From Piromyces finnis finn (lineage: Eukaryota; Fungi; Neocallimastigomycota), in assembly GCA_002104945.1 (NCBI GenBank), contig MCFH01000077.1, positions 124,001-188,000 on the forward strand: DNA of 64,000 nucleotides, read 5' to 3'. Under the pieces are notes generated by a model, which made no database searches, had not been told where the DNA came from, and was given only the letters and a program-made list of their open reading frames with translations. Shown here piece by piece: positions 12,524 to 62,122 of this stretch. A program made the position numbers and the translations under genes. The first letter of the stretch is position 1. Each line of letters opens with the position of its first letter.

Positions 12524-13055
12524 TTCCGAGTGCATTTCTCCCATCGATCAGAGTTAGCTCCAATGGTGGTTCTTAGAGAAACGTTGGCTCATTCCTATTG
12601 CTAGGTGGTTGTGACCCTCCTGGTCTGTCATACTGTTTCTTCAGCTTCGACGCTCACTTAATCCATGTACATTAGATGCATGTCGTTGTACGATATTTCA
12701 CAACTACAATGCTAAGCCTCTTATAGTCAATTTGATCACGTGTCAACCGCCCCCTAATGTTTACACTTAAATTGATTAAGGAATATTATGTGTTTTTGGC
12801 ATAGCCTAAGTCACCACTTATTAAGTTCTAATTTGGAATGTACCATGTACACTAGACCCTCTCAGGCCGGCTAGACGAGTGTTATTATCATAGTAGTAAA
12901 TTAGAAAGTTCATTTATACTTACCTGAATATCATAACCCAACCCATGGCAAACCCAGTGGGAAAATCCACAGGCACTGACATCTGCGGGGTCGAACCAGA
13001 AGCCTTATGTATGCTAAGGAAACGCCTTAACAACCAGGATAAAAACTGGAACGAC
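12490..13055 (-). mobile_element. tRNA-related SINE, copy 1 (535-bp body plus poly(A))
   Basis: T31 tail at 12490-12520 on the plus strand. 14-bp TSD TCAAGGAAAAATAA at 12476-12489 and 13056-13069. B-box GGTTCGACCCC at 12987-12997 (minus). Appears identical to copy 2. Confidence 0.85.
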
Positions 13056-14143: not shown

Positions 14144-14245
14144 ATTATTATTATTATTATTATTATTATCTTCTGAATTATTATTATTATTATTATTATT
14201 ATTACCTTCTGAATTATTATTATTATTATTATTATTACCTTCTGA

Positions 14246-14277
<32 letters not shown>

Positions 14278-14284
14278 CTTCTGA

Positions 14285-14318
<34 letters not shown>

Positions 14319-14320
14319 GA
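14144..14320. repeat. Compound (TTA)n microsatellite encoding poly-Asn blocks inside the helicase
   Basis: TTA runs punctuated by TCTTCTGAA or CCTTCTGAA, giving (N)n-SED/SEG units on the minus strand. Confidence 0.9.
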
Positions 14321-15820
14321 ATCATCGTTATTAACATCATTTAAAATATTGTCAGAATCATTATCGTTATTTTCATCATCTGACATATTGTCAGAAAAAT
14401 TTTCATTATCATCATCATTTGAAATGGAAATAGAAATATTTTCATCATTATTATTATCTGAAATATTGTTAGATGAACTTTCATCATAATTATCGTGTGA
14501 ATCCTCTTCTTTAAAACCAATTACACCAAGCGTTGCTTTCACATGACTAATTCCAATGTTGCATATACTTTTTGATTCACTAGCTAACGTTTTGTAATTT
14601 TCAAGTTGCAATCCTTTCATGGAAACTTTAAATATTTTAAAGCGTTCAATTCTTGGCACATGAGAACCTATAAAATTAACTGATGTGTCCGGTGGATTTA
14701 ATCCATAATACGATACATGACCTTTCATTATTTCTTCCAATTTTTTCGGTGTTATTTTAATACTGAAATCAAAATCAGGTTTTATTAATTTTACTAAACT
14801 TGTTATTTCATTATAATTATCGAAAATCGGAGTAGCCGACATAAATAAGACTCTCGAATCTTTTATGTTATTTAAAAATTTAAGTAATTTATTATATATA
14901 ATTTTATTACCAACTGTATTTCGAAAATGGTGTATTTCGTCAATGATTAAAAGCCTATTTTCATATAACGAAATATCTTTTATGGTTTCAACGGATTTAC
15001 AAAAAGTAATGTAGGTATGAAATTCGATGTATCTTTTTATAAATTGGTGATAATTGGTAATACCGGTTGGAGGTTGACGATAATTGTATGTGTAAGCGTA
15101 CCATAACGCGACTCTCTGTTTAAATTCCATAATGGCCTCTTTACTTTTTACCAATATAATACTTGGTTTTTTATAAATATCAATGAAATTCAATAAAATC
15201 CATAGAGCTGTAAATGATTTCCCAGTACCCGGCGAATGATAAATTAGAAATCTTTTAGCTATTTCATTTTCATTTGTCATATATCGTACAGGTAAAATTT
15301 GATATCGCTTCATATGGAGATTCTCTTCAATCAATTTTTCTTCAGTATATATTTCTTTGAATTCCCGATATTTACAAAGTTCTTGAATATCTGAATATGT
15401 CATATTTTTATTCTATATAAAATGAATTAAAATGAAATGATGGAACTTAATAAAATGAAAAATCAAATTTTAATATTAATTAATTAAATGGACCAAAATA
15501 AATTCTTGGTAACTTGAATTTTTTGTGAAGGATAAATAAATTTATATATATTTAAATAATCATTTTAAAATTATCGAGTATTTTAAAAATATCTTTAATA
15601 AGTAACAAAAAAGAGAAATCATTATGAATATTTAGATTCATTAATTCTGTTCTATACTACATTTCCTACATACATGATTGGAAAATAAATTAATATAAAT
15701 TTATTTATTTTCTATTTATATATATATTTATATTATATATAATTTATTAAACTGTTTGTTCAATTAAAACATAAATTTATAAAAAAAGTAAATAGTCGGA
15801 TTCGAACCAATGGCATAATC

Positions 15821-18202: not shown

Positions 18203-20026
18203 AAAAAAATATTAATATTAATAAAGATATTATATATAAATACAGATATTTAAATTAAATTTAAATTTTATTGTATAAATTTGTTTTATAATTCTATTTT
18301 ATTTTATTTTTTTTTTTAAAAAAAAGGGTTTTAATAAGATTTTTTAAAATATAAATTCAATATAAAATGATATAATAAAAATATCAATAATTTATGAAAA
18401 TGTATATTCCATTTAACCATAATTTATAAAATGCATAATCCATTTGGTAAAAAGAAAAGAAATATATATATTTTAAATTCATATATATACATTTTATTAA
18501 TATATATATTTAATATCTAAGAGAAAACCTACTTAAAATGTATTAGTAATGACTTATTCCTTATTGATTATTAAACATTATTTTAATTAAGTAAAAATTA
18601 TCGTTTTATAATATTTAATTCTATTTTAAATATTATATATATGAAGTAGAAACTATAAAAAAAATAAATATAAAAATAAGAACAATTTAATATTAAATTT
18701 AATAAAATAATAACAAGGTTTTATTAGTGTAAATTAATGATTAATAAATAATAATATTAAATGTTTATATATAAATTTTCTTATAATAAATCAAATTATT
18801 TAAGTCAAAAAATCATTATTTTATATTTATAATTTTCCATTTTATTATTAAACCATTATATATTTGTTAAATAAATATTTTATATTTAAAACTAATTTAT
18901 AAATTATATATATTTTATATTTGTAAAATTGCATATATATGTTTATAACATCTAAATAGTTTAATTCATAGTATATAAAAATATTATATGAATATTTTAT
19001 ATATTTTATTATAATATAGTTTATTTTTTTCTTAAAAAAAAAATAATTTGAAATATAAATATATTTTTTATTTTTTTTTTGAATTAAAATTAAATAGTGG
19101 AACAAAATCCGCAAGTATTATTTAATATCTAAAAAAAATAATTAATTAATGAATGACATCATATTTTATAAATATGGTATATTAATTTCATTTAAAGTAA
19201 TAAAAATTTTCAAAGTGTTGTAATATCATTAAAAATCAGTATAAAAAATCATGCACATATATACCATAAATAGTAAATTTTATGTTAAAAATTAATTATT
19301 AAAAAACAATTGATTTAATAAATTTATGGAATAAAAATAGTTAAAACGTTTTCATTATTTTTTTTAAAAGCATAAAAATTATTCATAAAATATTAAAATA
19401 TTAAAATTTAAAATTTATATTTTTTTACATTGAATATTTGAATAAAAAAAAAAAAAGCATTCCCTTAAACTAATTTAAATAAAAATTTGTCTTTTTTAAA
19501 AAAAAAATAAACATGATGTTTTATCGTTAATTTTATTTTAATAATATTAAAAGCATGATAATTATATAATCTGGATAACCACAAACCGTTATATATTTAA
19601 TTTTTGGGGTTTTAAAAAAAGTATTGTTATAAATACTTTTTTTTCTTTCTAACTTTTTTTATTTTTTAATAGATTTTATTTTAACCACTCTAAAAAAGTA
19701 TTTATTTTTTTATTAAATTATTTTTTATTAATTTTTATAATTAACTAGATTTTTTTATTCTAAATCTATATAATTCTAAATATTAATAGTTTAAATATAT
19801 TTTTATATTCTATAGATTAAAAATAATAATTATGTTTCTTAAAGTTTATACAAACACTCTAAAAAATACTAATTAAAATTTTTATTGAATAAATATTATT
19901 TATTTATTTTTATTTTTATTTATTGTATTTTATTTAATACCGTTTAGTGTATTACTTTTGTTATGTATTGTATTGTTTATTTTTTTTTTATTTTGTAATT
20001 TAGTTTTATTTGCTATTGCGATTAGT

Positions 20027-23000
20027 TTAGTTATTAGTTGGTTCGAGAGGTTCTTCAGTCCAGAGGTTGAAGTAGAAGAGTTGAGTTGTATCGAATTCAT
20101 TACATTCAGTCATCACTAAACTGGAAGAATCAGCTAAAGCAATACATTGATCTGGTGTAATTGGTGATTTGATAAAGTTGCCATCACGATAGAAATCAGT
20201 ACCAGTTTCACCACATTTACCTAAAACTAAAGAACTGTTATCAGAAAGCATGATACAGTGACTAATATCAAACTTCAAGTGGAAATTACCATTATGTGTG
20301 TATGGAATATCCCAGAGAGAGTATGTAGAGTAATCACATTCAGCTAATGTAATTGATGAATCGAGAACACCAGAAGAGTGTACACATTTGTTGGTATCTG
20401 CGTTGTACAAGTAATAAGTTTCAGTGTTAGGAAGTGGAGTGAGTGTAGCGAATGTGGTTTCAGAACCAAGTATACCACACCATAAATTATTTTCGATACC
20501 CCATTGACCATATTCATCAGTAGTAACAACATCAGCATTTGGATCAGAGCAACATGGATAACCTAAAACCTCAGAAAAGCAGACGGTGCTTGGTGTTGGA
20601 TTATGGTCCCAGTTGTAGAACTTTTCATCATCGTTTTTAGCACAAGTGTTCAAGTTCATTTTAATTTCATCTTTATACATATCTTCAGCATTAAGAATTC
20701 CTACGCATTTGTCGCTAGATTCAATCAATCCTAAGAATCCATCATTACCATGGACCATCTTTGCTTGGTCATCACATTTACCTAATTCGAGTGAACCTGT
20801 ATCAACATCAGCAACACGTAAACAATAATCTGGATGTGCCATAGAGTAGAAGTATCCTTTACGTGAATTCAATACCATCCACTTGGAATAATCAGAATCA
20901 TCACAAGCTTTAACGGTGATTGGCTTATTTGGTTTTTGTGGAGCATATAAACACTTGTTGGTATAGGCATGATAGAACCAGTATACACTATGTCCAGGTT
21001 TAACAGTAGCACTTGGTTTGCTGTTTGTTGGAGTAGAAGAAGGTTCAACAGTAGTTGTAGTAGATTCAGCCATAAGACACCAATTGTTATTTTCAGAACC
21101 CCAATTGCCTTCATCATCAGTGTATATAACTTCAGTAATTTCAGGAGAACAGCATGGATAACCAGCTTTAGAGTGACATTCAGAGGTAGGTTCAGGAGTA
21201 GATGTTGAAACTGTAGTAGTGGTATACTTAGGTACAATAATGATTTCGCGCTCAGCTTCAAACTCTGGATTCTTTGTAATCACTTCCTCAATAGAATCAA
21301 CAATCTTACCATTCCATCTTTCAATGTACCACTCAGAATATTCATCTTTACTTGTTTCAAATTTCAAGCCGCTACTATTTTTAGTTTTGCCGTTCAAACA
21401 AATTTCTGGATCTACACTGTTCTTGAGGCAAATGTATTTGTTGTCAACTATTTTAAAGTGAATATGATGGTTAATTGTTTCATCAGGTTTGCTACAATCA
21501 AACATTCTTGGATCTTGAGAATTCATAGCATACATGCATTTACCAGTAGCATTTAAAACCAATGTTTCATTGTCATAAGTCCATATACTATGATTACAAT
21601 CACCCATCAAAAGAACACTAGTATCTGAATGTAAATTGGTAATAAGACATTCTTGAGTTTTTCTATTCTTAATACGGAAACTATAATCTAATTTAGCTTC
21701 ACCAATACCGCACCATTCGCCATCTTCAACACCCCATTTATTACCATTATCATCAGTATATTGAACTTCAGGATTTACTGAAGAACAACATGGATAACCA
21801 TCATCCAAAATACCAAAGGAACATCTGTCATAACCAATACCACACAATTTACCATTTTCTATACCCCAATTACCAAATTCATCAATATATTCGACTTTAG
21901 TGTTTTGATCATAACAACATTTGTATCCAAGTTCCGAAAATATAGATGAACAAGTTAAATGTTCATATCTTGGAGATTCTAAAGCACTGGGATTAATAGT
22001 AAACTTACCTCCTAAACATTTTGAATTATCAAGTTGTGAGCAGAACTTACCATTCTTTATGATGAATTTTTCATATTTATTATTATCTTCACAATAATCC
22101 ATATATAAATTTTCACCATTAAGATTCAAACATTTAGCATCATAGGATGATACAATAAAATATACTTGACCATTTTGTCTAATAAACCATTTATTCTTTT
22201 TGTTATTAACACATTTATAATTAGTTTTAATTAATTCTTGTGATTGACCCTGATTGTTAATTATTGTTTTACGTTGAAGGCAAGCTGGAATATCATCATT
22301 TCCTGATGATATTTGTATATAATAGTACAAATCGGTATAAATTGAATAATCACCAACTTGAATTTCATTATTTTGTAATTCACCTCTCTTACTTAATACA
22401 TAATTACTACTATCACGAATTTTGCGTGTTAAATGAACATCTGGAAAATCTAAAATCATCCATTGATTGTGTATTTTTGGATTATTATTATTAAAATATT
22501 CAACCAATTTTTTATTTATACTACTAGCATGTGTATAAACACTACTAAAAACTTCCCACACAGCCTGTATATTCATAAAATTTATAGTAAGTACATCATT
22601 ATTATTTCTATCATAAAACATAGTAGTATTAGCATGATCCTTTCCATAAATATTAAAAATATCCTTATTTTTATCCCATGTTGTTAGTATATTATGATCT
22701 AACATATCTTTAATAATAGACCATTTTTCATTAACCCCTGCATTGTAATTATCTTGTACAAGATAATTATTACCATAATCTGAAATCTTTATTCTTGGAA
22801 AACATCCTTCATGGAAATTATTAACAAAATTAACAACATTACTGTTATATAGTGAAGGCCTACGAATTTCGCTAACTTCTGTTGCTGGATATGTAAAATT
22901 CATATAACTAACCCATGAAAGATCATCACAAGAACCCATTCCTGGAATATCTATTTTTTTGCCTATTTGAATTGTCTGATTATTTTTTGTATATTTGTAA

Positions 23001-24040
23001 TCTCCACGTGTATAAATAATTATTGTACCTCTTGCTTTTCCAAGAGTTGGAAATAACTCATTACTTTTATTATCTTGATAAAAATAATCTTTATAAAATT
23101 TTTCATATGGTCTATCAGAATTATTTATACTAAGATTAGCAATTGCTTCATAAAATTCTTCCTCTTTTAAATCACCTTTTTCTTTCATACTACCATCTTT
23201 GTTATACTTATGGAAATGACAATTATCACATTTTAAATGCATAATAACAGTTTCACTTGGATTATAATGTAAAAAATTAATAGCTTCATCAAATACATTA
23301 CTTAAATAGTACAAATCATTAGTTTTTTTATTAATACAATCAAATTTATCGTGAGTAAGATATATTTGTTTTTTTGGATTAGTTTCAAGTCTTATATCTA
23401 AATATCTAATTCCATGCATTAATTGTTGATATATATCTAAAGATTGAGTTCTTCCCCATTGTCTTCTAAAGCCATTTATAATAGGAAAAGAATGCCAATC
23501 TACAGCATATGTTCCACTATCATGAGTACCAGGAATATTAATTTGATTGATCCTTGTATTATTAAGATATTTACTCATCCAATTAGAATCACTGTCTGCA
23601 TAAGTAAAATCACACCATCCATATTCAGTTAAAGCACGGTTATACTCAACATCAATATCATAAACAAGGACATTTGGTTGTAGTTTTATTTTTTTAGTAC
23701 TCGTTGTTTCACCACCGTTACTTGTATAATAACAAAATCCTTCTTTAATATTAACTCTACCTTTGAACTGACATTGATCAGGATCTACTCTAGTAGATTG
23801 ACCAAATTCACCATCTACTTTTTCAGTTTTATAATAACAACCATATATATCATCACTAATTCTCAAAAATCCTTTATCTCTTTTTGTACATATGTACGTT
23901 TTTGAACAATCTTTAAGGCTAAATAAATATGCTTCTTTATCAACATTATCTAATTCAAAATATTTACCTTCATCTTTGGCACTTAATACATATTTAATTG
24001 ATATAAATAAAGTATTAATAAATAATAATGTTAATTTCAT
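20027..24040 (-). CDS. Secreted bacterial-type PI-PLC X-domain protein with ricin-B lectin domains and four fungal dockerin (CBM10-like) repeats
   Basis: Signal peptide MKLTLLFINTLFISIKYVLSA. PI-PLC motifs INIPGTHDSGT, TQSLDIYQQLMHGIRYLDIR, YLTHD. Dockerins of the form GYxCC...DxxGxWGxExxxWCGI (four copies). Ricin-type NxxTxKC and QxF/W repeats. Confidence 0.9.
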   Translation of the reverse strand: MKLTLLFINTLFISIKYVLSAKDEGKYFELDNVDKEAYLFSLKDCSKTYICTKRDKGFLRISDDIYGCYYKTEKVDGEFGQSTRVDPDQCQFKGRVNIKEGFCYYTSNGGETTSTKKIKLQPNVLVYDIDVEYNRALTEYGWCDFTYADSDSNWMSKYLNNTRINQINIPGTHDSGTYAVDWHSFPIINGFRRQWGRTQSLDIYQQLMHGIRYLDIRLETNPKKQIYLTHDKFDCINKKTNDLYYLSNVFDEAINFLHYNPSETVIMHLKCDNCHFHKYNKDGSMKEKGDLKEEEFYEAIANLSINNSDRPYEKFYKDYFYQDNKSNELFPTLGKARGTIIIYTRGDYKYTKNNQTIQIGKKIDIPGMGSCDDLSWVSYMNFTYPATEVSEIRRPSLYNSNVVNFVNNFHEGCFPRIKISDYGNNYLVQDNYNAGVNEKWSIIKDMLDHNILTTWDKNKDIFNIYGKDHANTTMFYDRNNNDVLTINFMNIQAVWEVFSSVYTHASSINKKLVEYFNNNNPKIHNQWMILDFPDVHLTRKIRDSSNYVLSKRGELQNNEIQVGDYSIYTDLYYYIQISSGNDDIPACLQRKTIINNQGQSQELIKTNYKCVNNKKNKWFIRQNGQVYFIVSSYDAKCLNLNGENLYMDYCEDNNKYEKFIIKNGKFCSQLDNSKCLGGKFTINPSALESPRYEHLTCSSIFSELGYKCCYDQNTKVEYIDEFGNWGIENGKLCGIGYDRCSFGILDDGYPCCSSVNPEVQYTDDNGNKWGVEDGEWCGIGEAKLDYSFRIKNRKTQECLITNLHSDTSVLLMGDCNHSIWTYDNETLVLNATGKCMYAMNSQDPRMFDCSKPDETINHHIHFKIVDNKYICLKNSVDPEICLNGKTKNSSGLKFETSKDEYSEWYIERWNGKIVDSIEEVITKNPEFEAEREIIIVPKYTTTTVSTSTPEPTSECHSKAGYPCCSPEITEVIYTDDEGNWGSENNNWCLMAESTTTTVEPSSTPTNSKPSATVKPGHSVYWFYHAYTNKCLYAPQKPNKPITVKACDDSDYSKWMVLNSRKGYFYSMAHPDYCLRVADVDTGSLELGKCDDQAKMVHGNDGFLGLIESSDKCVGILNAEDMYKDEIKMNLNTCAKNDDEKFYNWDHNPTPSTVCFSEVLGYPCCSDPNADVVTTDEYGQWGIENNLWCGILGSETTFATLTPLPNTETYYLYNADTNKCVHSSGVLDSSITLAECDYSTYSLWDIPYTHNGNFHLKFDISHCIMLSDNSSLVLGKCGETGTDFYRDGNFIKSPITPDQCIALADSSSLVMTECNEFDTTQLFYFNLWTEEPLEPTNN

Positions 24041-24270
24041 TTTACTTTTATCACTATAAATATTATAATTATATAACTTGAAAATTGTGGAAAATTCAAA
24101 ATTTGCAAATATAAATAATTATGTTTATTATTATAATATTTGTAGAATAAATAATTAACAATAAAAAATCATTTTAAAAAAAATATTTAAAATATAAAAT
24201 ATTTGTAATATAATTTTAAAAAAAAAAATCATTATAAGAATCTTTATCATTACCATTAAAATTGTATAAT

Positions 24271-25008
24271 TTATTTTTTAACATTAGTATTATTATTTTT
24301 TTTGTAACATTTTACAAAACAACAACAACAACAAATTATTATTAAAATAAAAATTATTCCCGCTATAATACCTAAATTTACAAATGCTCTAGTTAAACGA
24401 TAATCAGTTGGTATATATTGAATTTTATGACATGTTCCATTATAACAAGCTTTAAACGAACAATCTATATCTTTTGTACAAGACTCACCAACCATTAGAC
24501 CACAATAAATATCACTATTACTTTCAGAAAATAAAGTAGTTTCTGTATAAATAGTATCACAACTTTCAACATTTGCATTCACATTATATGTACAAGTATT
24601 ATTAAAACATTTATTTGAAAAACATTGAGTATCAGTTTTACAATCAGTAGAGACATCAATAATTTTATTATTATTAGATTCAATATAATCACTTATTTTT
24701 TCCTCATAATTATATACATAAGGAATCATAATATATTTATGAATATAACCATTTTTATCTGGAAATTCAATAAATGGTTTAATATTAGAAGGTTCTACAC
24801 ATACACATACATTATCTTTACAATAAGCTGACAAATCAGAACGACATATTTTATAATTTGATTCGTTTTTAACCCAACTTGTAGTATTGTCAAAACGACT
24901 AATAAGTTCATCTGGAATATTGGTAGATTCAATACTTACAGTACGAGTATAACTACATTGAAGAAATAATATGTAATATATACTTAATAATAAGATGAAA
25001 TTTTTCAT
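24271..25008 (-). CDS. Cys-rich single-pass membrane protein, 245 aa
   Basis: Signal peptide, repeated CxxDxxCxSxxCxNxxC modules, C-terminal hydrophobic segment followed by a CCCCC cluster and basic tail. Confidence 0.8.
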   Translation of the reverse strand: MKNFILLLSIYYILFLQCSYTRTVSIESTNIPDELISRFDNTTSWVKNESNYKICRSDLSAYCKDNVCVCVEPSNIKPFIEFPDKNGYIHKYIMIPYVYNYEEKISDYIESNNNKIIDVSTDCKTDTQCFSNKCFNNTCTYNVNANVESCDTIYTETTLFSESNSDIYCGLMVGESCTKDIDCSFKACYNGTCHKIQYIPTDYRLTRAFVNLGIIAGIIFILIIICCCCCFVKCYKKNNNTNVKK

Positions 25009-28000
25009 TATAAATTATTTTATAAATTTTTTTATAAAATAAAATTTAAATTGTAATATCTATTATTTTATTTGTTTTAATTTAAAATAATTATTTTTGA
25101 ATTTTATTTATAATTTATTACATTTATTATTTTATTTTTGAAAATCATTTTAATAGTATTAAAAATATTTTAAAGTGTTTTAATTTATTTATTTTTTTTT
25201 AATTTTAAATTTATAAAAAATAAATGGTAGGATTGGTTCATTTCTAATATTTTAAATGATAATTCGTTGTTTTTTTAAAATAAAAAATAAAATGATTTGT
25301 TAGAAATTGAAATTATCTTGAATCCGTTTTATATCATTAAAATTGACACCAACCAATGATTATTCAGAAAAATAAATTAAAATACATTACATTATTATAT
25401 ATAAATATTATATATTATAAATAGAGAATATATCATATTAATATTTTAAGACAAAATTTATTTAATTTCAAAAAAAAAACGTTATAATAAAAGATAGTTG
25501 AATAAAAATAAGACCCGTTATTTAAATAATTATATTTATATATGTTCTATTATATATTTTATCATTTATTCTATTAGAATATTCTTTATCTTTAAAATTT
25601 TTGAAAATTAAAAATATTTAAAAATTTTAATAGTAATAAAATTTGGTTAAATTAATTAATCCAAAATTTTTATGGTACATTTAAAAATCATATTTTAAAA
25701 AAATATACTTACATATGTTGTATATTAAATATTTTCATGTTGATTGTTATGTTTTATTAATAATTTTTATTATCTTTATTTTCTTTTTAAATCAAAGAAA
25801 CATAATTTCTGTTTTATTTTGTTAATCATAAATAATTAAAAACATAAAATGATTATAAAACTTTATCTTATAAATTATGAATTTAGGGATTCCAATTTAT
25901 ATACGAATATATCATTAAATACGTTTCTATATTTTACTTTGACAAATTATTTATATGAAATGAAAAAAGTATATAGATAAAAATTTAAATTAATAATATT
26001 AGATAATTTAAATAATAACATTTAAAAATAATCATTGTTATTTTAATTTTATAATATTTATATAAATTAATAAAAATAAATATTTGATACATAATTATAG
26101 ATTTAATGGGGTAATATATAATTTATACAAAATAAAAATCTATATAAACGGAATTTTAAATATATTATTTTTATTTGTATATACAATGTAAAGTTATAAT
26201 AATTATTTGAAGCATTCTATTTTTTTTTTAAAAAAAAACATATTTATAACATTAAATGAATAAATAAAGATATTACATATTATCTGTATATATTGCATCA
26301 AATTTTAAAACAGATATAATAATCTATTTTAATATAATTAATCCAGAACTATTTCTTATTTATAAATAAAATATAAGATTTTAATAATGTAAATCTTTAT
26401 ATAATAAATAATTATAATTTTTATATAATATTATTATATAATTTTCATAAAAAATAGTATTAAAATTACTAAAAATTATTTAATATGTAAAATAATTAAT
26501 TAAAATATTTTTAATAAATAATCAATTAATAAGTATAAATAAGTTGAACAAAGAACGATTTTAAGAAGTTCTTTGTGAGATTATTAATACTCATTTTTTA
26601 TATAGTAAATTCAATATTTAAAAATTAATAATTATTATTTATATATTAATAAAAAGCTGAATAAAATAATTCTTTAAAAACTATATTTATTATTCCTTAT
26701 CTTAACACTTACTTTACTATATAATTAAGCCTATCCTAACCTAGTAGACTTAATTATAAACTTAAATCCACTTAGATTCTTGACAAAAAAAATTTGATTT
26801 CTGGACAACTAGAAAATAAAAGGTTATATATATTTTTGAATGTAAGAATTAATAATTATTTTTTGTATAAATTAATTCTTATTTAATTATTTTTTAATTA
26901 TTAAATTAATTATTTATTTAAACTATTAGCATACATTCATTTAAATTACTATAAACATTTATCTATATTGATATTAATTATTCATTTACTTAATTTAAAA
27001 TTTATTTAATTACTATATTAATTATTTATTTATTTAATTTAGTAATATATTTAAAATAATAGTAAACATTCATTTATTTTTTAATTAATAATTTTTGTAT
27101 TACATTTTATAAGTGTTAGAATATGTGTAACGTGATAAGTTTATAATATACTATGTAATATGTGTCAAACACATTGAAATTTATTTGTACTACATTAAAT
27201 ACATAAGCCATAATTGTAAATCATATAAATACATGTAATTTCACATAATGTAAACATTAGAGTCTTTAGAACAAATATCCTCATGTAATTCTTAATAATA
27301 AAATACATTAATAAAGTTGACATATTCATAAAACCCAATTAACCAAAATGTTAATAGATTAAGAGTCTCAATTGCCCTCAGTTCTCAACTAGCTCTCATA
27401 TGCTCTCATGGTACTACTAATATAAAACTTTAAAAGGACTTAATAAAATGGAAACTCCCAGCCGGACAAAATAGAAGAAAGAAAATACTAACTTATAATA
27501 AAAGCTACCTCTAGTCAACTTTAAAGAAAAACTAATATCAAAAATTAGAAGACTCTCAATACCTTAAATTAAAACTATCATTCCAATACTTAGCCAAAAA
27601 CATCAATTAGAAGAATATGACTGATATAATTACCACCATACCAAAATTCAGAAAATGAAAAATTAAAATTTACAAAAATTTTGAAATCTCAAATTGAAAT
27701 TTGAATTCTAAAATTGAAATGTCAATATAAAATTGAAAATTATGAAGTGACAAATGAACAATAAAAATGAAAGAAAATCACTACTTGTTAAAATAAAGTT
27801 TCCTTACACTAAAATAATATAGATAATTTTATATTCCGAAAATAAATTATTCTAAAATTGAATTTTGAATTTTATACTTTTAATTTAAAATTTAAAAATA
27901 AACCAAAGGAAATTAAATTCAAATAACCTTAGAACAATTTTAGTTCAATTTATTTAGAATGTTAACAATACTTATTTAAAACATAAAACATGAAACTAAG

Positions 28001-28228
28001 AAATTATTAGTTCTGAAACTATTTTAAAATTATCAATGTTAAATATTAATATAAAGTTAATAATTTAAAATCCTAAAATATATACCATAAATATATAGAA
28101 GAAAACAAATATTAATCTTAAACTACTTTATTTCGTCAAATCCGTATAAATTGTTAACAAAGCAACAATTGTTTTATTATTTACCCATCTTAATTAAAAT
28201 TTATTATTTATTATAATTTCATTAAATA

Positions 28229-29677
28229 ATGAAACTAATAAATAACATATACAATTTAATTCAAATATTTCAAATATTTTTAATTCTACCGACAACATTT
28301 GCTTTAAATGAACTATGTAATTTTAATGGAAACTACGGTGTTTGTGTAGACATAAATGATTGCAAATTGGTAGATAAACAAGAAGGAATAGCAGTTCCTA
28401 AACCAAATCTTTGCAATGGTGATAAAAACATTCAGTGTTGTATTAAAGTTGTTTCTACTCTCAGAAATGGTAATTCACTCTCAATATCTGAAAATTGTAA
28501 ATACTCATATTTTTGTCCTAATAATTATAGACAATATTATAATGAATGCCCAGGAGATAGGTATAATACATTGTGTGTATCAAATGAATCAATAGAAGAA
28601 AAATCATATTTTTTTGCTGTAGGATCAAAAGAAATAGAATTTATTAAAGATATTAAAGAAGGAAATAAAAAATACTTTTTAGATGAAATCCCAAAGTATA
28701 AAGCATATTATGAAAAGTTTAGATTTACTGAAGACGAAATAATTTCATATGCCAACACTGCATTGGATTATTTAAAAACAAGTTATCTTTTCACAAATAC
28801 AATAAATATTATGAACCTTAAACATATTGGTATTTATTTAGGATCTAAAGAGAAAGGAAGACTTTTTGAATTCGATAATAATGGATGGCATGTTAAAGAT
28901 TATACTATGGAAAAACTTGATGAAGACCATAATGATCCAAACAAATGGAATTGGACTCACTTCAAGGAATTCAGGGGATATACAAGGGTTTCTCCAGAAA
29001 GCCTTGAAGACTCATTAAATGATTATAAAGAAGTCAATCGTTACTTTAATAATAAATCATATAATCTTTTTTGTAACAATTGCCATGATTTTGTAAAATG
29101 GTGTTTAGAGATTATTACTATGGGTAAACGTCTTGTAGAACCAGAATCCATTAATATTATAAAAGACAATTATACATTTAATACAAATGAAATTGACAAT
29201 AAAAAAGCAGCCGAAAATATAAATACTATTATTAGTGATATACATAAAAAATTTCGTGCAAAAGGAAGTGGTGTAATAGATATTTTAAAGGTAGAATTAA
29301 TTTACTATTTCCTTGTAAACATAGGATTTAAAAATAACGACATCATAAATATTAAATATAATGATCATGAAATATGCGCTGGATTGGATTATATAAATCT
29401 TCTTAGAGAAAAGAATTACAATGACGTTTGTAAAAGCTATGATTATAGTGGACTTATAAATTCTAAAGCCACTATTAATGGTAAATTTATCACATCAAGT
29501 GAAAACTTTTCTAATTTTATTTTCGACAACGATTTATGTTTAGAATTAAATTCTAGCGATATAGTTGATAAATCCGATGATATCAATGGAACTGAAAACT
29601 TTAATGATATTACTTTCACAAACATTTTTATTATATTTACATCAGTCATATTCTTGGAATTATTCAATTTATACTAG
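28229..29677 (+). CDS. Secreted Cys-rich protein with a permuted papain-like (PPPDE/LRAT-like) domain and hydrophobic C-terminus
   Basis: Signal peptide ending ...LILPTTFA. Cys-rich N-terminal module (C..CVDINDC..LCNGDKNIQCCIK). Catalytic-type HIGIYLG...GYT...YNLFCNNCHDFVKWCL. Tail TFTNIFIIFTSVIFLELFNLY. Confidence 0.75.
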   Translation: MKLINNIYNLIQIFQIFLILPTTFALNELCNFNGNYGVCVDINDCKLVDKQEGIAVPKPNLCNGDKNIQCCIKVVSTLRNGNSLSISENCKYSYFCPNNYRQYYNECPGDRYNTLCVSNESIEEKSYFFAVGSKEIEFIKDIKEGNKKYFLDEIPKYKAYYEKFRFTEDEIISYANTALDYLKTSYLFTNTINIMNLKHIGIYLGSKEKGRLFEFDNNGWHVKDYTMEKLDEDHNDPNKWNWTHFKEFRGYTRVSPESLEDSLNDYKEVNRYFNNKSYNLFCNNCHDFVKWCLEIITMGKRLVEPESINIIKDNYTFNTNEIDNKKAAENINTIISDIHKKFRAKGSGVIDILKVELIYYFLVNIGFKNNDIINIKYNDHEICAGLDYINLLREKNYNDVCKSYDYSGLINSKATINGKFITSSENFSNFIFDNDLCLELNSSDIVDKSDDINGTENFNDITFTNIFIIFTSVIFLELFNLY

Positions 29678-30667
29678 AAATCCTTAATTTCGTCAACTTT
29701 ATAATATAAAGCCATTATAATTTCTACACATATATATAATTTTAAATAATCATCTATTAATATACACATTTCATAAAAATTACACTTTAATGTATTTATA
29801 ACACATAATCTAAATTCTAAATTCATTTGATTTTATTACATACATAATATACTTGATTACAAATTATATTTATCCTTACATAACATTATTATTTGTAATA
29901 TTCAAATAAATCCTCATACATTGCACCAAGAAATACTTAATTCAACTACTTAGTTTGAAACATAAATAATTAAAATATATATTAACAAATTATACATAAC
30001 AAATTAATTCGAATATATTTAATAGTTACTGCTTTTCTACAAAGCGGATATTCGAAAGAGGATGTCATTTAATAAATTTACATAATAAATAAAAAATGCT
30101 AATACAAAAATAGCATATATAAGATATTACAATAATAGTAATAATAAAACAGACTCCTCATATACTTAATTACCTATATGTTTCAACTACTATGATTTAT
30201 ACGCAACAATTATGAGTGCATTTAACTATTCAAATTACAAATCAAAATATTCTTAGAATAAAATATTTAGATTTGAGGGGGAAGAATAACCACGATAGTT
30301 AAATATAAAACATATATTAACAACTAGTCAATAAATACAAATAGTTAGGATAATATAGTACGTCACGTAATTACTCAAAGAAATAATACAAGAAAACACA
30401 ATAAGAAAAATTATCCAAAATAAACCAAATATTATAATACTACGAAAAACAATTAAAACACATAATTTACAACTTTAAGTTGATAATAAATTAATAACAA
30501 ATATTTTACTAAAATGCTAAGTTTATAATCCATAATATAAAACATATAAAATAATACCCAAAATTAAGGTTTAAAGTTTTATCCTAAGAAAAAACGAAAT
30601 ATAATAGGTTTAACAGTTTATCCAGAAAACTAAGTATAAAATCAAGTTTAATAAAATATAATTAAAT

Positions 30668-30875
30668 GACGTAAAACCAAAGAGTAGTCATAAATAATAA
30701 AGACGTAAAACCTATGAGTAAACCAAAGTGTTGTCACAAACAATAAAGACGTAAAACCCATGAGTAAACCTAAAGTGTTGTCATAAATTAATAATAGGAT
30801 GATGTAAAACCATAAAAGTATTCAATCCTTAAAACATATAATAGGATGGTGTAAATCCAAATGAGTATCCAATCC
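30668..30875 (+). repeat. Degenerate tandem repeat in the 3' internal region of the cargo element
   Basis: About five imperfect units beginning GACGTAAAACC / GATGTAAAACC / GGTGTAAATCC. Confidence 0.6.
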
Positions 30876-31948
30876 AAATAATTATTTTAAACTTGAATTA
30901 TTAAATTACATATTTTAAAGGTTTAGTTGTTTTATCCACTAAAAAGCAATATATAATATAACACATAAATATGGGTAATAATATAATTCTTGTAATTATA
31001 TAAATTCAGGATATATCTAGCAAAATAGTAATAATATAGTTTAATCATTTAGAAATCAATCATTAAAATGGTGAATTAAAATTTTAATAGTATAAAATAG
31101 TTAGATAATATAGAACATAATAATAGTAGCACATATTCACCAGTAAACCAAATTATTCCTGAAGAATAATTAGGTTTAAGGGGGAATGTTAGAATATGTG
31201 TAACGTGATAAGTTTATAATATACTATGTAATATGTGTCAAACACATTGAAATTTATTTGTACTACATTAAATACATAAGCCATAATTGTAAATCATATA
31301 AATACATGTAATTTCACATAATGTAAACATTAGAGTCTTTAGAACAAATATCCTCATGTAATTCTTAATAATAAAATACATTAATAAAGTTGACATATTC
31401 ATAAAACCCAATTAACCAAAATGTTAATAATAAGAAACATTATATATTTTATTTTACGTTTGTATTTTATATTTTTGTATCGTATCTTGAAATAACTTAT
31501 AGAAACAATTAGAAAATATAAATACATATTAGGACAATCGGATATTAAAGTTTTTCCGAATTTTAATCGGTTTTACTTAATATTACGATGATTGATATAT
31601 TAGTTATCAATCGAATATCTTTTTAGGTTTTTCTTCTAGTCTTTTCCTAAAAAGATTATTTGTTAAGATTAGAAATTCTTTATTAAACTTTAAATTATCA
31701 AAAAATTATAAATATAAGGACTCTGGAATTCCACTAAAGAATCCAGAGTTATTATTTTAAGACAATTATAATAAATAACCCTTTCAAAAACTATATTCAT
31801 AAAAAATATTTACATTAAAGATAGTCTTAATATTTTGTGCTTGTTATTATAATTCACTTATAATAAACTCTTTAAGATAAGTATTCATTTTTATTTACTA
31901 TTAAGAAACTTCTCAATTTAATAATACATATTACGATTTGTATTATTA

Positions 31949-33001: not shown

Positions 33002-36000
33002 TGTCACAATAACATATATAAAAATTTAAAAAATTTGGACACATGGAAAAAATTAAAAATTTTTTTAAAATTTGAAAATTTGAAAATTTGAAAAAATTTA
33101 TTTTTTAAATTTTTATTAAAAAATTTCAAATTATAAAATTTCTAATATTTGAAATTATTAAATTTTTAAAATTATTAAAATTTTATTATTAAAAATTTTA
33201 TTTTAAATTTATTAACTATTTACAATAATTATATTAATTATTAATTTATAAAAATTAAATATTTTATAATTAGACAATAATTAATTAAAATTAAAAAATG
33301 TAATAATTAAAATTGTTCATGTATAAAAAGAACAAAAATTGACAAAAATTACGAAGCTTTAGCGTTAGTAATTTTTTAACCTAAAGTTAATAAAATTTAT
33401 AAACTCCTATAAAACCTAAAACTTTAAAAATTTTAATATTTTTAATAACTTAATATATGCTGATATTAAGTTATTGCTAAAATAAAAATATTATTTAAAT
33501 TTCTTTATATAAATATTATTAGCTTTACGCCTTCAATAGGAAAGCGTATTATATTTATTAATTAATATAACTAGTGTGCTTACCACACTTTTCTTTAATA
33601 AAAAATCGCTTTTTGACATTACTAACGCTTATTATAAAAGTGCGCTAAGCACCAATTAGTTAGTAATTATTAATAACTAAATATAATAATTAAAGTTTAA
33701 TGGAAAAATCTCCACTTACACCTATTAAAGTGGATACAAAAGAATTTTTTAACCGCCTACAAACTACCAAGAGAGAACGTTCCCCAGGAAATACTCCCGT
33801 AAGAAAATCAAAGATGCCTAATCATTCCGGACAAACTAATGCTTCTACGAGTAATCCTACTCAGAAGCCAACTACTAATGAGGATCTCAAGGCCCTCATT
33901 GAGTCTTTAACTGCTACCTTAACTGGGAATATCAATCAGTTAAAGGTTGATATTCAAGCTACCAGAAGGGAAAACGAAAGTCTCAATGATCGTTTGACTG
34001 TTTTGGAAAACTCTACTCAAGTTATTATGGGTAAGATGACTACCTTAGAAGTCAACGATGCTAGGAAAGACAATCAACTCGCTGATATCAAAGCTCATAT
34101 CAGCAAAGCTACTCAAAGAGTTGATGAGTTGTCTACTCCCGTTACTCCTTCTGCTGCTACCCCTCACGAACCTGACGGTGACGTCATCATGGGAGATGCT
34201 TCGCCTCCAAACGTCGCTGAAAAAATGCTTTCTTACTCAGGAGAAAGTATTCAACTACGCAGATTCATCCGTCGATGCGAACACCACTTCTTAAGACACA
34301 TCAAGTTCTATGGAAACAATGAAGCTATGAAAGTAAACTTCATTGAAGATTGTCTTACTGGTGATGCTGCAGATTGGTACGATGTTGAACAAGCAGACTT
34401 CCAGGAATCTCATCCGAATAGAAAGGTTCTTTACGAAGCTTTGAGTAAGAGATTCCTTAACCCGAAGGATATCAACATCACCAAAATCGACCTGATGAAG
34501 CTCAGACATAGTTGGGGAAAAGCTTCCGAATACTTAGGAAAATTCTCCCAATATGTCAAATTAATTGGATGTTCCGAAGACATTCAATTAACCATCATGC
34601 TTTTCCAAGTTAGACCTACCGTGAACCACGCCTTTAGTAAATTAACTTCGGATAGACAGACGTTAGAAGAACTGAAGAATCTTCTAATCAAATATGATGC
34701 TTCCAAGGATACTTATTACGATGATACTTTGGAAAGACAAGCTAACTACAAGGACAAAGAGCCCTTAATAGCTAATTTATTAGGTATTCATGGCAGTCTT
34801 TATTCCAAGAACCCTAACAAGACTAACAATCGTAATAACAACCAAAGGAATAACAATAACAACAACCGCCCGTCTAACCAAAAAGGAAAAGGCTCCAGTA
34901 ACTTGGATAGCAAGTCTAGTACCCAAAATCCCAATAAAAGTACTAAACCTAATAATGGTACTTCATACTCCAGCTATCTCTGTGAAGTAGAAGAGCAAGA
35001 TATCTTAGAGCTACCAAATCCTGATCCGGAGAAGTATCCCATCGTGAAGACTAGTGTAAAAACTTCTAAAGGATCTAGACAGGTTATCACTTCGTCTCTC
35101 TTAGATTCCGGCTCTACTACCAATGTAATCCATATGGATTTAGTGAAGAAACTAGGAATTAAGACCATACCAGCTGATACTGTTGTAAAGGTCATGGGAG
35201 GTAATGTCCTAATGCATTACATCACAGAAGAGTTCAACATTGTAATGAACTTATCTTCTTTAGGAGGAACCCGAGAAGAGGTTCGTCAATACAAACTTCG
35301 ATGCCACGTAGCTGATCAGCTTCCTTCTTCGATTCTCCTAGGTTCTAAGTTCATGAAAACCAACTTCTTCTGTATCTTAACACAACCTGACCATTCCTTT
35401 ACAGTTAAAATTGGTCCTGTTCCTTTCTCCAACCATAATGGATCTGAGATTAAATCTCCTAACTTTAGGAATGATTTGAAGAAATCTACACCTCTTCATG
35501 AAGTTATGTTTATCACAGAACTCGAAGACTCAAATCTGGATAAATCAACTTCCATTCCAACAGAAACAGTCTTCATAGCCGATGATCAGAATCCTGAACT
35601 AGTAGAATCTATCAACGGTATACCTTTGGAATATGAAGATTTATATGAAGCCTTCAATGAAGAACGAGCCGATGAACTTCCTGAACATCGTGTATATGAT
35701 TGTTCTATCGATTTGAAACCTAATGCTTCATTATTTTATGGGCCAATTTATCCAACTACTCCTACTGAACGTCAATTTATTAAGGAGTATATTGAAGAAA
35801 ACTTGAATAAAGGATTCATTAGAAAATCCCGATCTCCTGCTGGACATCCAGTTCTACTCCAAGATAAGAAGGATGGTAGTCTCAGATTTTGCGTTGACTA
35901 TCGCAAGCTCAACGACCAAACTATCAAGAATGCCTATCCGCTACCTTTAATCCTATCAGTCTTTGAATCAATGAAAGGTGCTAACTATTTCACTAAGTTA

Positions 36001-39000
36001 GACCTCAAGTCAGCTTATAATTTAATTAGGATTAAAGAAGGTGACGAATACAAGACTGCATTCAGGACGGCATTTGGTCACTTTGAGTACTTAGTCATGC
36101 CTTTTGGACTAACTAATGCTCCTGCAGTTTTCCAAGCTTTCATTAATGATATCTTTAGTGATCAAATTAATAAGTACGTTCAAGTGTACTTGGATGATAT
36201 CATTATCTACTCCAAGACCCTTGAAGAACATGTTCAACATGTTAGAAATGTTCTTCAATTAATCATTGAAAACAACTTAGTTGCGAAACTCAAAAAATGT
36301 GAGTTTCACAAAGCTGAAATCGAATTTTTGGGTCACGTAATCAGTAAGGAGGGAATCAAAACTGATCCTCACAAAATTGAAGCAGTTAAGAACTGGCCTA
36401 TCCCCACTACTGTGAAAGAAGTTCAGTCCTTCTTAGGGTTATGCAATTACTACCGTCGCTTTATCTCTAACTTTTCTAAAATTGCAAAACCATTATACAA
36501 CTTAACTAAGAAAGGCGTCACTTTCATATGGACAGACGAGTGTAATAGAGCATTTAATCAACTTAAAGAATTTCTTACTTCAGCTCCAGTTTTACTTTGT
36601 CCTGATCACGATAAACCATTCATAGTTGAATGTGACGCAAGTGACTTTGCTATCGGGGGAGTACTTTCACAAAAAGGTGATGATGGAGACCTGCATCCAG
36701 TTTATTACTTTTCTAAAACCCTTCATGATGCAGAACTTAATTACTCTATCACCGAAAAGGAACTCTTAGCAATTCGTCAAGCTTTTATCGAATGGCGTCA
36801 CTTACTTCAAGGTGCAAAATATCCTATTACCGTTTATTCAGACCATCGAAACTTGCTTTTTGCTACCAAACCGCAACTTCTATCCCAAAGACAAGCTCGT
36901 TGGCAAGAATACTTTGCTACCTTTGATTTCAAGATTATCTATCGACCAGGAAAGAAAAATGGTAAAGCTGATGCTCTCTCTCGTAGATCCGACCATATGC
37001 TCACAGTTGGTAAGGATATAAGTGAATCATCCTTACTTAAACCAACTCAATTAGAAGGATTCAACGAAGATGAATGCTACTTCTCTATGGAAACTAGCTT
37101 CATTGACGACATTAAGCAGTGCTACCTTCAAGATGAAACCGCTTGTCAGATTCTTAAGGATCTTGAAGTTCCAAATAGTGATCATCCTTGGATTCTTCAA
37201 GATGGCCTTTTAATAAGAACCAAACATCCGGAGCAAGTATATGTTCCAAGTCAACTAAGACTCTTAGTTATTAAGCTCAACCATGATGCACCCACTGCCG
37301 GTCACTTGGGAGTCGATAAGACTTATGACATTCTTAAACGTAATTTCTATTGGGTTAATATGCGTCAAGATGTCGAGTCTTATATTCGAAGCTGTAGTGT
37401 ATGCAAGGCAATGAAAACCGATCACCATGCTCCTTATGGTAATATGATCCGTGTCCCTCTTCCGGAACTTCCATGGCAACACCTACAAATGGACTTTATC
37501 ACGGACTTACCATCAAGACCTTGTAACTCTACCTTACCATTCGACTCTACCAATCCGAACCACCATCAAGGTACCATAATGGTTACTACTTGCTACTTAA
37601 CTAAGATGATACACTTAGTTGGGTTCAAACATTTACCCACTGCTAAGGAAACTGCTACTGCTTTTCTTAACCATATTTTCAAACTGCACGGATTCCCCTT
37701 ATCTATTGTTACAGACCGTGGTACTCAGTTCGAAAGTCGTCTTTGGTCCCACTTGATGGAATTCTTTAATATCGATCACCACTCTGCTACTACTGGCCAT
37801 CACCGCACTGTTGGACAAGTAGAACGTAACAACGACTACGTTGAAACTTATCTTCGTTGCTACTTAGCTCAATTTGATGATCTCAGTTGGATGGATCATT
37901 TGTACTTAGCTGAATTTTGCTACAACAATTCCATCCATGCTTCCACCAAACAACCACCATTTCTCTCTGTTTATAATTATCAAGTTCACGCAAACCCACA
38001 AGTTGCAGACCTTGTTTCTTCTTTAGGACTTCATCCCCTCATCGATAGCTTCTCCCATAACTTAGCTGACCTTAAGCATACTCTCGAAGTCAGTCGTACC
38101 CGTTATCTCGATGAAAAGGATAAGCACCTTTATCACAACTTTAAGCGCTTCAAGGTCCACGATCTTGTTTGGCTTCGCAAACCCGCTAATTATCATCCTC
38201 CATTAGCGTTCAAGCTCCAATCCCGCAAGTATGGTCCATACAAGGTCACTGGTGTCGATGAATCTAAGCTCAACTACCGCCTTGATTTATCTACCTCACC
38301 TTTCCCTCGTGTCTACCCCGTATTCCACATCAGTGAACTCGAACCATATCATCCCACTCCTCACCATCTATTGCTCAACCATCCCAACTCCAATGAAATC
38401 ACCAAGATCCTTAGTTCTCGTAAATCGGGTCATTTTTACGAGTACTTAGTCACTTTTACTGACTTATCTCAACGTTGGATCAATGCTGACATCATTGATA
38501 AGGATGACTACTACAGCACCCTTTTAGCTGATTACCAATGTCGCGCTTACCAACAATTCACCAATTCCGTCCCAGATTCTTAATCTGGACCCCACTTATT
38601 AGTATCCCACCTACTAGTGTCTACCACCCTTACTCCTTCACTACCCACCTATCGCCACTACCCCACCTACTACCCACAACTCCGCTACCCACTAGTCGCC
38701 ACCACTACAACTACCAACCACTATTCCGCTACCCAACCACCCTCTTTCGCCTTTGCCCTCAACCCTCAAATTTCGCAACCTTTTCCGCACCCCAAAATCC
38801 GCTTCCCCTCGAGTCATATCATTTCCCTAACCTTCACGTGTAGTCTCCATTTCTGAAGAATCCACGTGATTCCCTCTCAACTTTTCTTGAACACTTTTAC
38901 ACTTCACTTTTTCAACACTTAGATTTTTTCAAAAATTGAGAATTTTCAAAAAATGGAAATTCTCAAAATTTTTCTAAGTGTCGTGGAAGTGTCCATGTCC

Positions 39001-39705: not shown

Positions 39706-39777
39706 GGGGTGTTAGCTCAGCGGTAGAGCAATTGACTGCAGATCAATAGGTCTTCGGTTCAAATCCGGAACGCCCCT
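39706..39777 (+). tRNA. tRNA-Cys (GCA)
   Basis: GGGGTGTTAGCTCAGCGGTAGAGCAATTGACTGCAGATCAATAGGTCTTCGGTTCAAATCCGGAACGCCCCT. Acceptor stem GGGGTGT/ACGCCCC, anticodon loop CT-GCA-GA, T-loop GTTCAAATCC, T-runs downstream. Confidence 0.95.

Positions 39778-62091: not shown

Positions 62092-62122
<31 letters not shown>

Follow-up and report, generated by a model that had tools for sequence, protein, structure and literature searches.

The genomes of gut fungi are large and repeat-rich, with many expanded gene families and many genes of bacterial origin, and the mode by which these genes multiply is an open question. A 64-kb stretch of Piromyces finnis DNA (hereafter, the window) poses this question in a concrete form: at 27109-31434, it holds two long terminal repeats (LTRs) around a single gene for an enzyme-like protein of 482 amino acids (aa), with neither gag nor pol between them. 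Is this a mobile element with a gene on board, or a host gene that lies between repeats for other reasons? We consider it likely that the unit is a complete, recent, non-autonomous Ty1/Copia-type member of an element family of the Neocallimastigomycota and that it carries the gene of a secreted surface enzyme. The same chassis surrounds homologous genes at at least 6 distinct loci, in two genera (P. finnis and Neocallimastix) and on metagenome contigs, and two sister elements have inserted at separate sites with their cargo on board.

Structure of the element and its locus

The two LTRs are direct repeats of 243 nucleotides (nt) and are 100% identical; a target site duplication (TSD) of 5 base pairs (bp) lies on both flanks, and a putative primer binding site (PBS) and a polypurine tract (PPT) occupy the inner edges, with the PPT directly abutting the 3' LTR. 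An initial annotation, made from the sequence alone, had recognized all of these signals, and each was found in its place. The parts of the element are as follows.

27109-27113, no strand: left TSD, ATAAG, read directly and the same as 31430-31434
27114-27356, + strand: 5' LTR, 243 nt, with ends TG...TA, 100% identical to 31187-31429
near 27224-27231, + strand: TATA-like motif in the 5' LTR (motif reading)
near 27297-27302 and 27310-27315, + strand: AATAAA motifs in the 5' LTR (motif reading)
27357-27372, + strand: putative PBS region, GATTAAGAGTCTCAAT, immediately 3' of the 5' LTR
27373-28228, + strand: untranslated leader without an open reading frame (ORF) of ≥60 aa
28229-29677, + strand: cargo gene (P0001, BCR36DRAFT_413124), 482 aa, intact and intronless (ORF and match to the annotation)
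29958-31186, + strand: conserved 3' non-coding module (blastn matches to many relatives)
30272-30283, + strand: internal second PPT-like motif, TTTGAGGGGGAA, one of three matches in the window
30674-30875, + strand: two pairs of 46/47-nt tandem repeats within the 3' module (repeat families D5 and D6)
31175-31186, + strand: PPT, TTTAAGGGGGAA, whose junction with the 3' LTR is the same in all relatives
31187-31429, + strand: 3' LTR, identical to the 5' LTR
31430-31434, no strand: right TSD, ATAAG, read directly

Apart from the cargo gene, no ORF on the sense strand of the element reaches 60 aa. The gene's description in the initial annotation as single, intact and intronless was borne out, as was the reported lack of retroviral motifs: a tblastn search with the polyprotein of a Ty1/Copia element that lies in the same window detected no gag or pol relic in the element (best E 0.28). 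Neither termini nor a TSD of the cargo's own, such as a later insertion into an old element would have left, are present. A 28-nt inverted repeat between the leader and the end of the ORF is not a cargo terminus, because one of its arms lies inside coding sequence; it is absent from the relatives and barely exceeds what shuffled sequences give.

Within the PBS region, the 15-mer GATTAAGAGTCTCAA occurs at only two sites in the window, 27357-27371 and 8747-8761 (minus strand), the latter just inside the 5' LTR of the Copia element at 3156-9041; the chance expectation for the window is 0.21 matches with up to 2 mismatches. The idea that the two elements share their PBS holds as far as the identity of the 15-mer goes and does not extend to its placement, the Copia copy lying on the minus strand and starting 8 nt past the LTR end, with an incomplete repeat of the motif's initial bases before it. 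A PPT-like 12-mer is found at 3 sites in the window, namely, the Copia PPT, the PPT of the element and the internal site at 30272. No further LTR copies were found within the 64-kb window, an Rfam scan of the element gave no match, and neither did a search with the LTR as query of a phage collection ill-suited to this question. The TATA-like and AATAAA motifs may act as promoter and poly(A) signals, respectively, motifs of this kind being common in AT-rich DNA; the window is very AT-rich, with 12% to 25% G+C between genes.

Conservation extends over much of the non-coding sequence. Relatives retain the first 14 nt of the LTR as well as its last ~70 nt, the PBS region is identical across family members and two Copia-like elements, and the leader is 63% identical to that of a lysozyme-carrying relative (L040) over a stretch that begins ~460 nt before the ATG and runs on into the ORF. 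The 3' module comprises four blocks (~29958-30111, 30220-30306, 30653-30913 and 31062-31186), which, together with the LTR end and PBS, recur by blastn in relatives, some of which have an unrelated enzyme core; the tandem-repeat stretch at 30674-30875 is among the best conserved of these blocks. In most relatives, a motif similar to the internal PPT precedes the true PPT by 0.75-1.07 kb. Yeast Ty1 has a second internal plus-strand priming site, to which the motif at 30272 may be analogous.

A 98% identical relative of the cargo (P0002) is present on another P. finnis contig, MCFH01000170.1 (L002; 21.6 kb in size, with an annotated 201-aa protein, BCR36DRAFT_375825). It was considered as a second insertion and rejected: L002 is collinear with 18863-31347 of the window over all 12.5 kb, stopping inside the 3' LTR, and its 8.2 kb of 5' flank (18863-27113) differs from the window by 21 indel events and 0 substitutions. 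Since the collinear flank differs by indels only, L002 represents the same locus again, as a redundant and unpolished contig. The gene model BCR36DRAFT_375825 is an artefact, a distorted version of the cargo gene with 7 indel events and 0 substitutions in the ORF. L002 independently reproduces the flank, the 5' LTR, the cargo and the start of the 3' LTR, which supports the LTR-cargo-LTR layout against the initial doubt that the LTR pair could be an artefact.

A shared chassis, sister insertions and exchanged enzyme cores

Distant homologues of the cargo gene are also single intronless ORFs and lie between LTR-sized direct repeats wherever the flank sufficed; where it did, no member of the cargo family was found outside the chassis, the short contigs L041 and L042 being uninformative. 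Three signals recur at all family loci: TGTTAGAATATGTG at the beginning of the LTR, GATTAAGAGTCTCAAT or a close variant as the PBS, and a PPT of the form AGGTTT(A/G)AGGGGGAA. The LTRs end in TG...TA in the window, L007, L040, L046/L047 and L011 types and in TG...CA in the L003-L005 type. The loci other than that of the window and the pair L046/L047, which is described below, are the following.

L007/L008/L010, two Neocallimastix assemblies and a metagenome: P0030, 352 aa; LTRs of 217 nt, 100%, 99% and 100% identical, respectively; TSD ACTAT
L003/L004/L005: P0005, 384 aa; LTRs of 175 nt, ~95% identical; sits in an (AAT)n microsatellite
L011-L013, metagenomes: P0010, 631 aa, with glucosaminidase, NlpC/P60 and chitin-binding domains; LTRs of ~195 nt, 89% identical; flanks ATTAC/ATTAT
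L040, P. finnis MCFH01000137.1: P0013, a GH24 lysozyme; LTRs identical but for a single substitution and an 11-nt indel; TSD ATTCT
L043-L045, metagenomes: P0028; PBS upstream and internal PPT-like motif downstream

A perfect 5-bp TSD flanks all five of the five complete members (ATAAG, ACTAT, ATTCT, ATTTT and TAAAC), whereby the chance of each match in such AT-rich DNA is, by a rough estimate, ~0.008. The flanks of the L011 type, with its less similar LTRs, match at 4 of 5 positions, and the TSD of L003-L005 is unreadable because the insertion lies in the microsatellite.

Recent mobility is evident from P0016, of which three paralogues with >90% identity are found on three large P. finnis contigs. 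The two that were compared, L046 and L047, each have a pair of 217-nt LTRs at 100% identity, PBS, PPT and internal PPT-like motif. They lie on different contigs among unrelated neighbor genes and have different perfect TSDs (ATTTT and TAAAC, respectively). The homology between them, at 98% identity, spans exactly the unit, beginning at the first base of the 5' LTR and ceasing where the 3' LTR ends. This degree of identity at distinct sites with distinct TSDs signifies recent transposition with the cargo on board; near-identical copies at separate sites are found for this sister pair and not for the window element. In addition, a Copia-like element (L003:1589-7955, minus strand) is nested, in one Neocallimastix assembly, in the leader of the P0005 element of L003 and is missing from L004 and L005; its absence from other samples shows that the region is still dynamic.

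Comparison of L046 with L040 reveals segments of very different divergence. The 5' LTRs diverge by 1.5%, whereas the leaders diverge by 32%; identity is 79% up to codon ~130, with 0.083 non-synonymous (dN) and 0.056 synonymous (dS) substitutions per site over the shared N-terminal 127 codons. The enzyme core of ~0.8 kb is unrelated, encoding a GH24 lysozyme in L040 and a protein of no known family in L046, and the last ~34 codons through to the end of the 3' LTR are again 96% identical. Thus, the unit is a mosaic, and, as read from these alignments, the enzyme core is swapped in frame while the N-terminal module before it and the anchor after it stay constant. At greater distances, dN/dS is ~0.5 with dS saturated; an analysis of dN/dS among variants of one insertion was discarded, the divergence being too small. 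Long-term constraint is implied by the fact that ORFs of 350-750 codons are intact at 30-45% identity in a genome where chance stops are frequent.

A scan of metagenomes from the Joint Genome Institute with the 21-nt PPT/LTR junction retrieved 24 further contigs, none of which contains gag or pol. Several hold cargo-family ORFs, and some hold ORF-less miniature or tandem units. The ORF-less relatives of the chassis are L026 (a unit of 1072 nt), L022, L038 (three LTRs in tandem, ~1.1 kb apart) and L034 (a circularly permuted unit of 3243 nt), which represent tandem or circular forms unless the assemblies collapsed at the LTR. A full PBS-to-PPT interior at L035:530-1666 has a 379-aa coiled-coil ORF that is unrelated to the enzymes and without a signal-like N-terminus, and that may be a different kind of cargo; L028 has another ORF without family or Pfam match, upstream of the 3' blocks in the window order. 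Three candidates were not counted as alternative cargo. The FHA and RING domain ORF at L021:111-2263 is of a conserved family of host genes, with ~80% orthologues in both P. finnis and Neocallimastix, and joins a chassis 99.7% identical to that of L035 at a repeat-rich point, the junction being either a real recombinant or an assembly chimera; what L027 (MIF4G and RRM) shares is limited to the final ~130 nt ahead of the LTR, and L025 has an irregular block order.

The cargo protein and its relatives

The cargo protein is identical to the hypothetical protein BCR36DRAFT_413124 of P. finnis (GCA_002104945.1, contig MCFH01000026.1), and an exhaustive HMMER search of 1.84 billion representative proteins yielded a family of 26 relatives. 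Four parts can be distinguished in it, based in part on an AlphaFold2 model that was built from a 20-sequence alignment and has a mean predicted local distance difference test (pLDDT) score of 65, with 70-90 at residues ~28-345.

28229-28306, + strand: signal-peptide-like hydrophobic N-terminus, residues 1-26 (Kyte-Doolittle maximum 2.2 over 12 residues; model helix 2-26)
28310-28603, + strand: Cys-rich, beta-rich N-domain, residues ~28-125 (alignment; model pLDDT 74-83)
28604-29263, + strand: PPPDE/DeSI-like papain-fold domain, residues ~126-345, with His199 and Cys285 (Foldseek)
29615-29674, + strand: C-terminal hydrophobic tail, residues 463-482, resembling a glycosylphosphatidylinositol (GPI) signal (model helix 463-481)

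Foldseek comparison of the model with the PDB returned human PPPDE1 (3ebq) with a probability of 1.00 and the DeSI deSUMOylase (2wp7) with 0.99, all other matches having a probability of 0.08 or less; a profile search of PDB sequences with the window protein gave no match. His199 is invariant in the alignment (17 of 17 sequences) and precedes Cys285, which is the His-then-Cys order of PPPDE/DeSI proteins, and column 285 has Cys in 13 sequences and Ser in 6, the pattern expected for a nucleophile. In 3 of 16 relatives, Peptidase_C97 is matched at E ≤0.001. PPPDE/DeSI proteins (Peptidase_C97) are the best and only meaningful structural matches and share the order of the two residues with the window protein. 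To our knowledge, however, known PPPDE/DeSI proteins are intracellular, whereas the window protein combines a putative signal peptide with a Cys-rich extracellular module and an anchor, and one third of its relatives have Ser at the position of the nucleophile. The fold class also bears on the initial remark that a signal peptide with a C-terminal hydrophobic anchor is the topology of env-like genes: this likeness was not upheld, since the model matches PPPDE1 and DeSI, and no viral envelope or fusion fold was matched at E ≤0.001 among the predicted viral structures of BFVD (best probability 0.28).

The hydrophobic tail follows a disordered linker rich in Asn, Ser and Asp (residues 348-464, pLDDT <50), and its motif is shared by P0013, P0016, P0005, P0012 and P0015. 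The cargo protein is probably attached at the surface through GPI, judging from this tail. Every verified member of the family combines a hydrophobic signal-like start with one of two end modules: either a (N/S)G(T/A)xNF motif with a hydrophobic GPI-signal-like tail, as in the window protein, or a hevein-like Cys-rich module with a Lys-rich tail. The Cys-rich N-domain is common to lysozyme, glucosaminidase and NlpC/P60 paralogues; the relatives that share it match Phage_lysozyme, Phage_lysozyme2, Glyco_hydro_25, Glucosaminidase, Peptidase_M15_3 and NLPC_P60 in Pfam, and Chitin_bind_1 is also among the matches of the family. One protein, P0004, unites a PPPDE-like domain, a P0016-type core and the hevein module. 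The domain content suggests that the family consists of surface-exposed hydrolases that mostly target peptidoglycan, and an amide or isopeptide bond would be a plausible target of the PPPDE-like member. A bacterial protein sorted by the type IX secretion system, P0025 of Lutibacter sp. (4165 aa), has 7 stretches weakly similar to residues 52-104 (E 6.8e-6), a likeness that hints at a bacterial origin of the Cys-rich module.

Helper, rival explanations and wider context

We assign the family provisionally to the Ty1/Copia type, on the strength of the PBS and PPT that it shares with two Copia-like elements and of the 5-bp TSD. One of the two is the Copia element of the window (3156-9041, minus strand), which has an intact 1508-aa ORF with gag, protease-barrel, integrase and RVT_2 domains, 271-nt LTRs of 97.4% identity with ends TGTGAAC...CACA, and the flanks AATAA/AATAA. 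Having the PBS motif and the PPT type in common with the window element, it represents the kind of helper that would be required and is no more than a candidate for that role. A 129-aa ORF at 3436-3825, between its pol and 3' LTR, has no Pfam match. The other is the nested element of L003, whose PBS is as in the window element and whose LTR ends are more similar to it than those of the window Copia; its frame is split into at least 3 ORFs, with gag and integrase and a 353-aa ORF without matches, and no reverse transcriptase was detectable in it, nor a 3' module of the window type. This nested element has the same 148 nt of the leader on either side, a duplication that far exceeds a normal TSD. 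As for the primer, no tRNA gene in the 344 kb covered matches the PBS, tRNA-Cys being the only tRNA there, and scans of prokaryotic genomes and viral contigs with a 17-mer of the PBS gave matches at chance level, none of which lay in a tRNA gene or in AT-rich sequence with Copia genes. The complement of the PBS may correspond to an anticodon arm, tentatively that of a tRNA with a CUU anticodon.

On our interpretation, the unit would be transcribed from the 5' LTR to the 3' LTR, and one RNA would be both the mRNA of the cargo and the template for Gag, reverse transcriptase and integrase of Copia type acting in trans, presumably with a tRNA as primer, the insertion giving the 5-bp duplication. 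Recombination among related element RNAs or DNAs would trade the enzyme core in frame while the N-terminal module and the anchor stay fixed; through such exchange combined with copying, we propose, the lineage both multiplies and diversifies its surface enzymes. Most of these enzymes would be of the peptidoglycan-hydrolase type and plausibly target the cell walls of gut bacteria. The cargo of the window element seems to have resided in the lineage for a long time and not to have been captured recently, having been aboard before the elements diverged, because its leader and N-domain are homologous to those of the sister elements. More tentatively, and with considerable doubt, the chassis could be a retroelement-borne cassette platform, in which exchangeable cores, largely cell-wall hydrolases of bacterial or phage type that were presumably obtained by horizontal transfer, are placed between a fixed export module of signal peptide and Cys-rich domain and a fixed anchor, either a GPI-like tail or a chitin-binding module, swapped in frame by recombination linked to reverse transcription and multiplied by retrotransposition, so that an antibacterial surface arsenal would be built on a mobile element. 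The initial proposal of a Copia-dependent non-autonomous element that retro-duplicates its cargo stands at the level of the family, given the chassis at at least 6 loci and the pair L046/L047, and is less firm for the window element itself, for which no second insertion was found and the neighboring Copia element is only a candidate helper.

Several observations weigh against our interpretation. No second genomic copy of the window element was found besides the redundant contig L002, and its LTR termini, TG...TA, depart from the canonical TG...CA. The Copia element of the window has neither the LTR termini nor the LTR body nor the 3' module of the element, and the autonomous partner with matching LTR ends that the initial annotation had envisaged did not emerge: no autonomous gag-pol element that combines these LTR ends with this 3' module turned up among the window Copia, the L003 element, the 24 junction contigs and other collections, in which the scans gave nothing fungal, the whole genome of P. 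finnis not being covered. With regard to the enzyme, the TM-scores on target length are 0.51 (3ebq) and 0.48 (2wp7) for a model that is only moderately confident, and the Pfam matches to RTE1, Peptidase_C97 and LRAT at residues 250-299 are all below their cut-offs (25.1 versus 29.4 bits for RTE1 and 20.0 versus a gathering cut-off of 29.2 bits for Peptidase_C97). Finally, the N-domains of L046 and L040 differ by 23.7 non-synonymous and 4.3 synonymous changes, with no purifying selection, a pattern that is compatible with neutral or diversifying change, and the ORFs of L046 and L047 differ at 8 sites, in 3 synonymous and 5 non-synonymous codons.

Could the loci instead be domesticated relics, that is, immobile host genes that take their promoters and terminators from ancient LTRs, the pairs being kept identical by gene conversion? 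The cargo ORFs are indeed intact in every member despite a mutual identity of 30-45%, the P0030 insertion is common to two Neocallimastix assemblies and metagenomes, and the window element is single-copy. However, this explanation is unlikely in view of the near-identity of L046 and L047 at different sites with different perfect TSDs and unrelated neighbors, the exact PPT/LTR junction on 24 further contigs, among them ORF-less miniature and tandem units, and the Copia-like element that is nested in one copy and missing in other samples. That the ORF is a gene of the element proper, env-like or wall-lytic, which helps particles to leave or enter through fungal walls, strikes us as quite improbable: although the ORF family has stayed with the chassis in different genera, every member combines a signal peptide with a membrane or wall anchor, and several have lysozyme-type or chitin-binding modules that could act on polymers of N-acetylglucosamine, the structural matches are to PPPDE1 and DeSI and not to viral envelope or fusion proteins, the enzyme cores are interchangeable and of several unrelated folds, and ORF-less relatives with the same junction exist. 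Moreover, the element has no gag and, therefore, no particle of its own.

We regard as highly improbable a one-off, fresh capture of a host mRNA by Copia from an intron-bearing parent gene elsewhere in P. finnis, which would account for an intronless, sense and complete ORF between identical LTRs. The parent gene that the initial annotation had suggested looking for was not found, no close P. finnis paralogue was present among the 1.84 billion proteins besides that of the redundant contig, and the nearest relatives (41-43% identity) reside in the same chassis, with the homology of leader and N-domain to the sister elements also speaking against a recent origin. An assembly artefact, or two unrelated solo LTRs that flank a host gene, is scarcely credible. 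Redundant contigs such as L002 do occur in this very AT-rich and repeat-rich genome, but the flanking 5-mers are perfect, PBS and PPT lie at the correct inner edges, the second contig gives the same layout, and the same architecture is found in independent assemblies of other species and in metagenomes.

The element resembles several known systems without coinciding with any of them. Large retrotransposon derivatives (LARDs) and terminal-repeat retrotransposons in miniature (TRIMs), known from plants and other eukaryotes, have interiors that are non-coding by definition. Like them, the window element has an LTR pair, PBS, PPT and TSD, no gag or pol and a presumed autonomous partner, and it has miniature ORF-less relatives; unlike them, it has one intact, conserved and diversifying gene together with a conserved 3' module. 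In replication-defective transducing retroviruses, which are short-lived laboratory or tumor isolates of animal viruses and depend on a helper, gag-pol is partly or wholly replaced by a cellular gene. The resemblance here lies in the kept cis signals, the replacement of the interior by a sense, intronless gene of cellular type and the supply of proteins by a helper, whereas the present elements form a long-lived genomic lineage of fungi, whose cargo is a secreted enzyme and in which gag has left no trace. Capture by plant elements (e.g., maize Bs1) likewise places host-type coding sequence in an LTR frame and multiplies it by retrotransposition; 425 maize LTR elements contain gene fragments, the role of which is, according to the authors, not known (PMC2774510). 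Plant elements carry fragments, in contrast to the complete ORF described here, which is kept across genera and subject to in-frame cassette exchange, with no donor gene identified. Bdelloid rotifers have LTR retrotransposons with extra enzymatic ORF3s (PMC5408684), which are similar in the modular gain and sharing of non-retroviral enzyme ORFs among retroelements; these elements retain gag-pol in addition to ORF3, whereas in the window element the enzyme gene is the sole ORF.

An incomplete search of the literature found no paper on such elements in Neocallimastigomycota. An LTR chassis that holds complete genes of secreted enzymes, has recently been mobile and has exchanged its cores offers a concrete route to gene multiplication, one open to verification from sequence data alone, and the initial suggestion that such elements contribute to the growth of gene families in gut fungi is supported by the family-wide chassis and the L046/L047 insertions. 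The case also shows that LTR retrotransposons can keep whole genes over the long term, beyond fragments of the plant type. For annotation, genes of the BCR36DRAFT_413124 type are listed as ordinary hypothetical proteins though they lie inside mobile elements; repeat masking would hide them, and naive counts would misread the expansion of their families. If the cassette platform is real, it would be a eukaryotic, RNA-based counterpart of a gene-cassette system.

The remainder of the window contains further retroelements and host genes. A Ty3/Gypsy element at 33700-38583 (plus strand) has one intact gag-pol ORF of 1627 aa and 37-44% G+C, compared with 12-25% in its surroundings, and a second one at 55401-62575 (minus strand) has direct repeats with 300 nt at 100% identity and a gag-pol region that is spread across four ORFs. 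The host genes include one for a 1337-aa protein with four CBM10 dockerin repeats, PI-PLC-X and ricin lectin domains (20027-24040, minus strand), one for an SNF2/DEAD-type helicase (12920-15403, minus strand) and the tRNA-Cys gene at 39706-39777 (plus strand).

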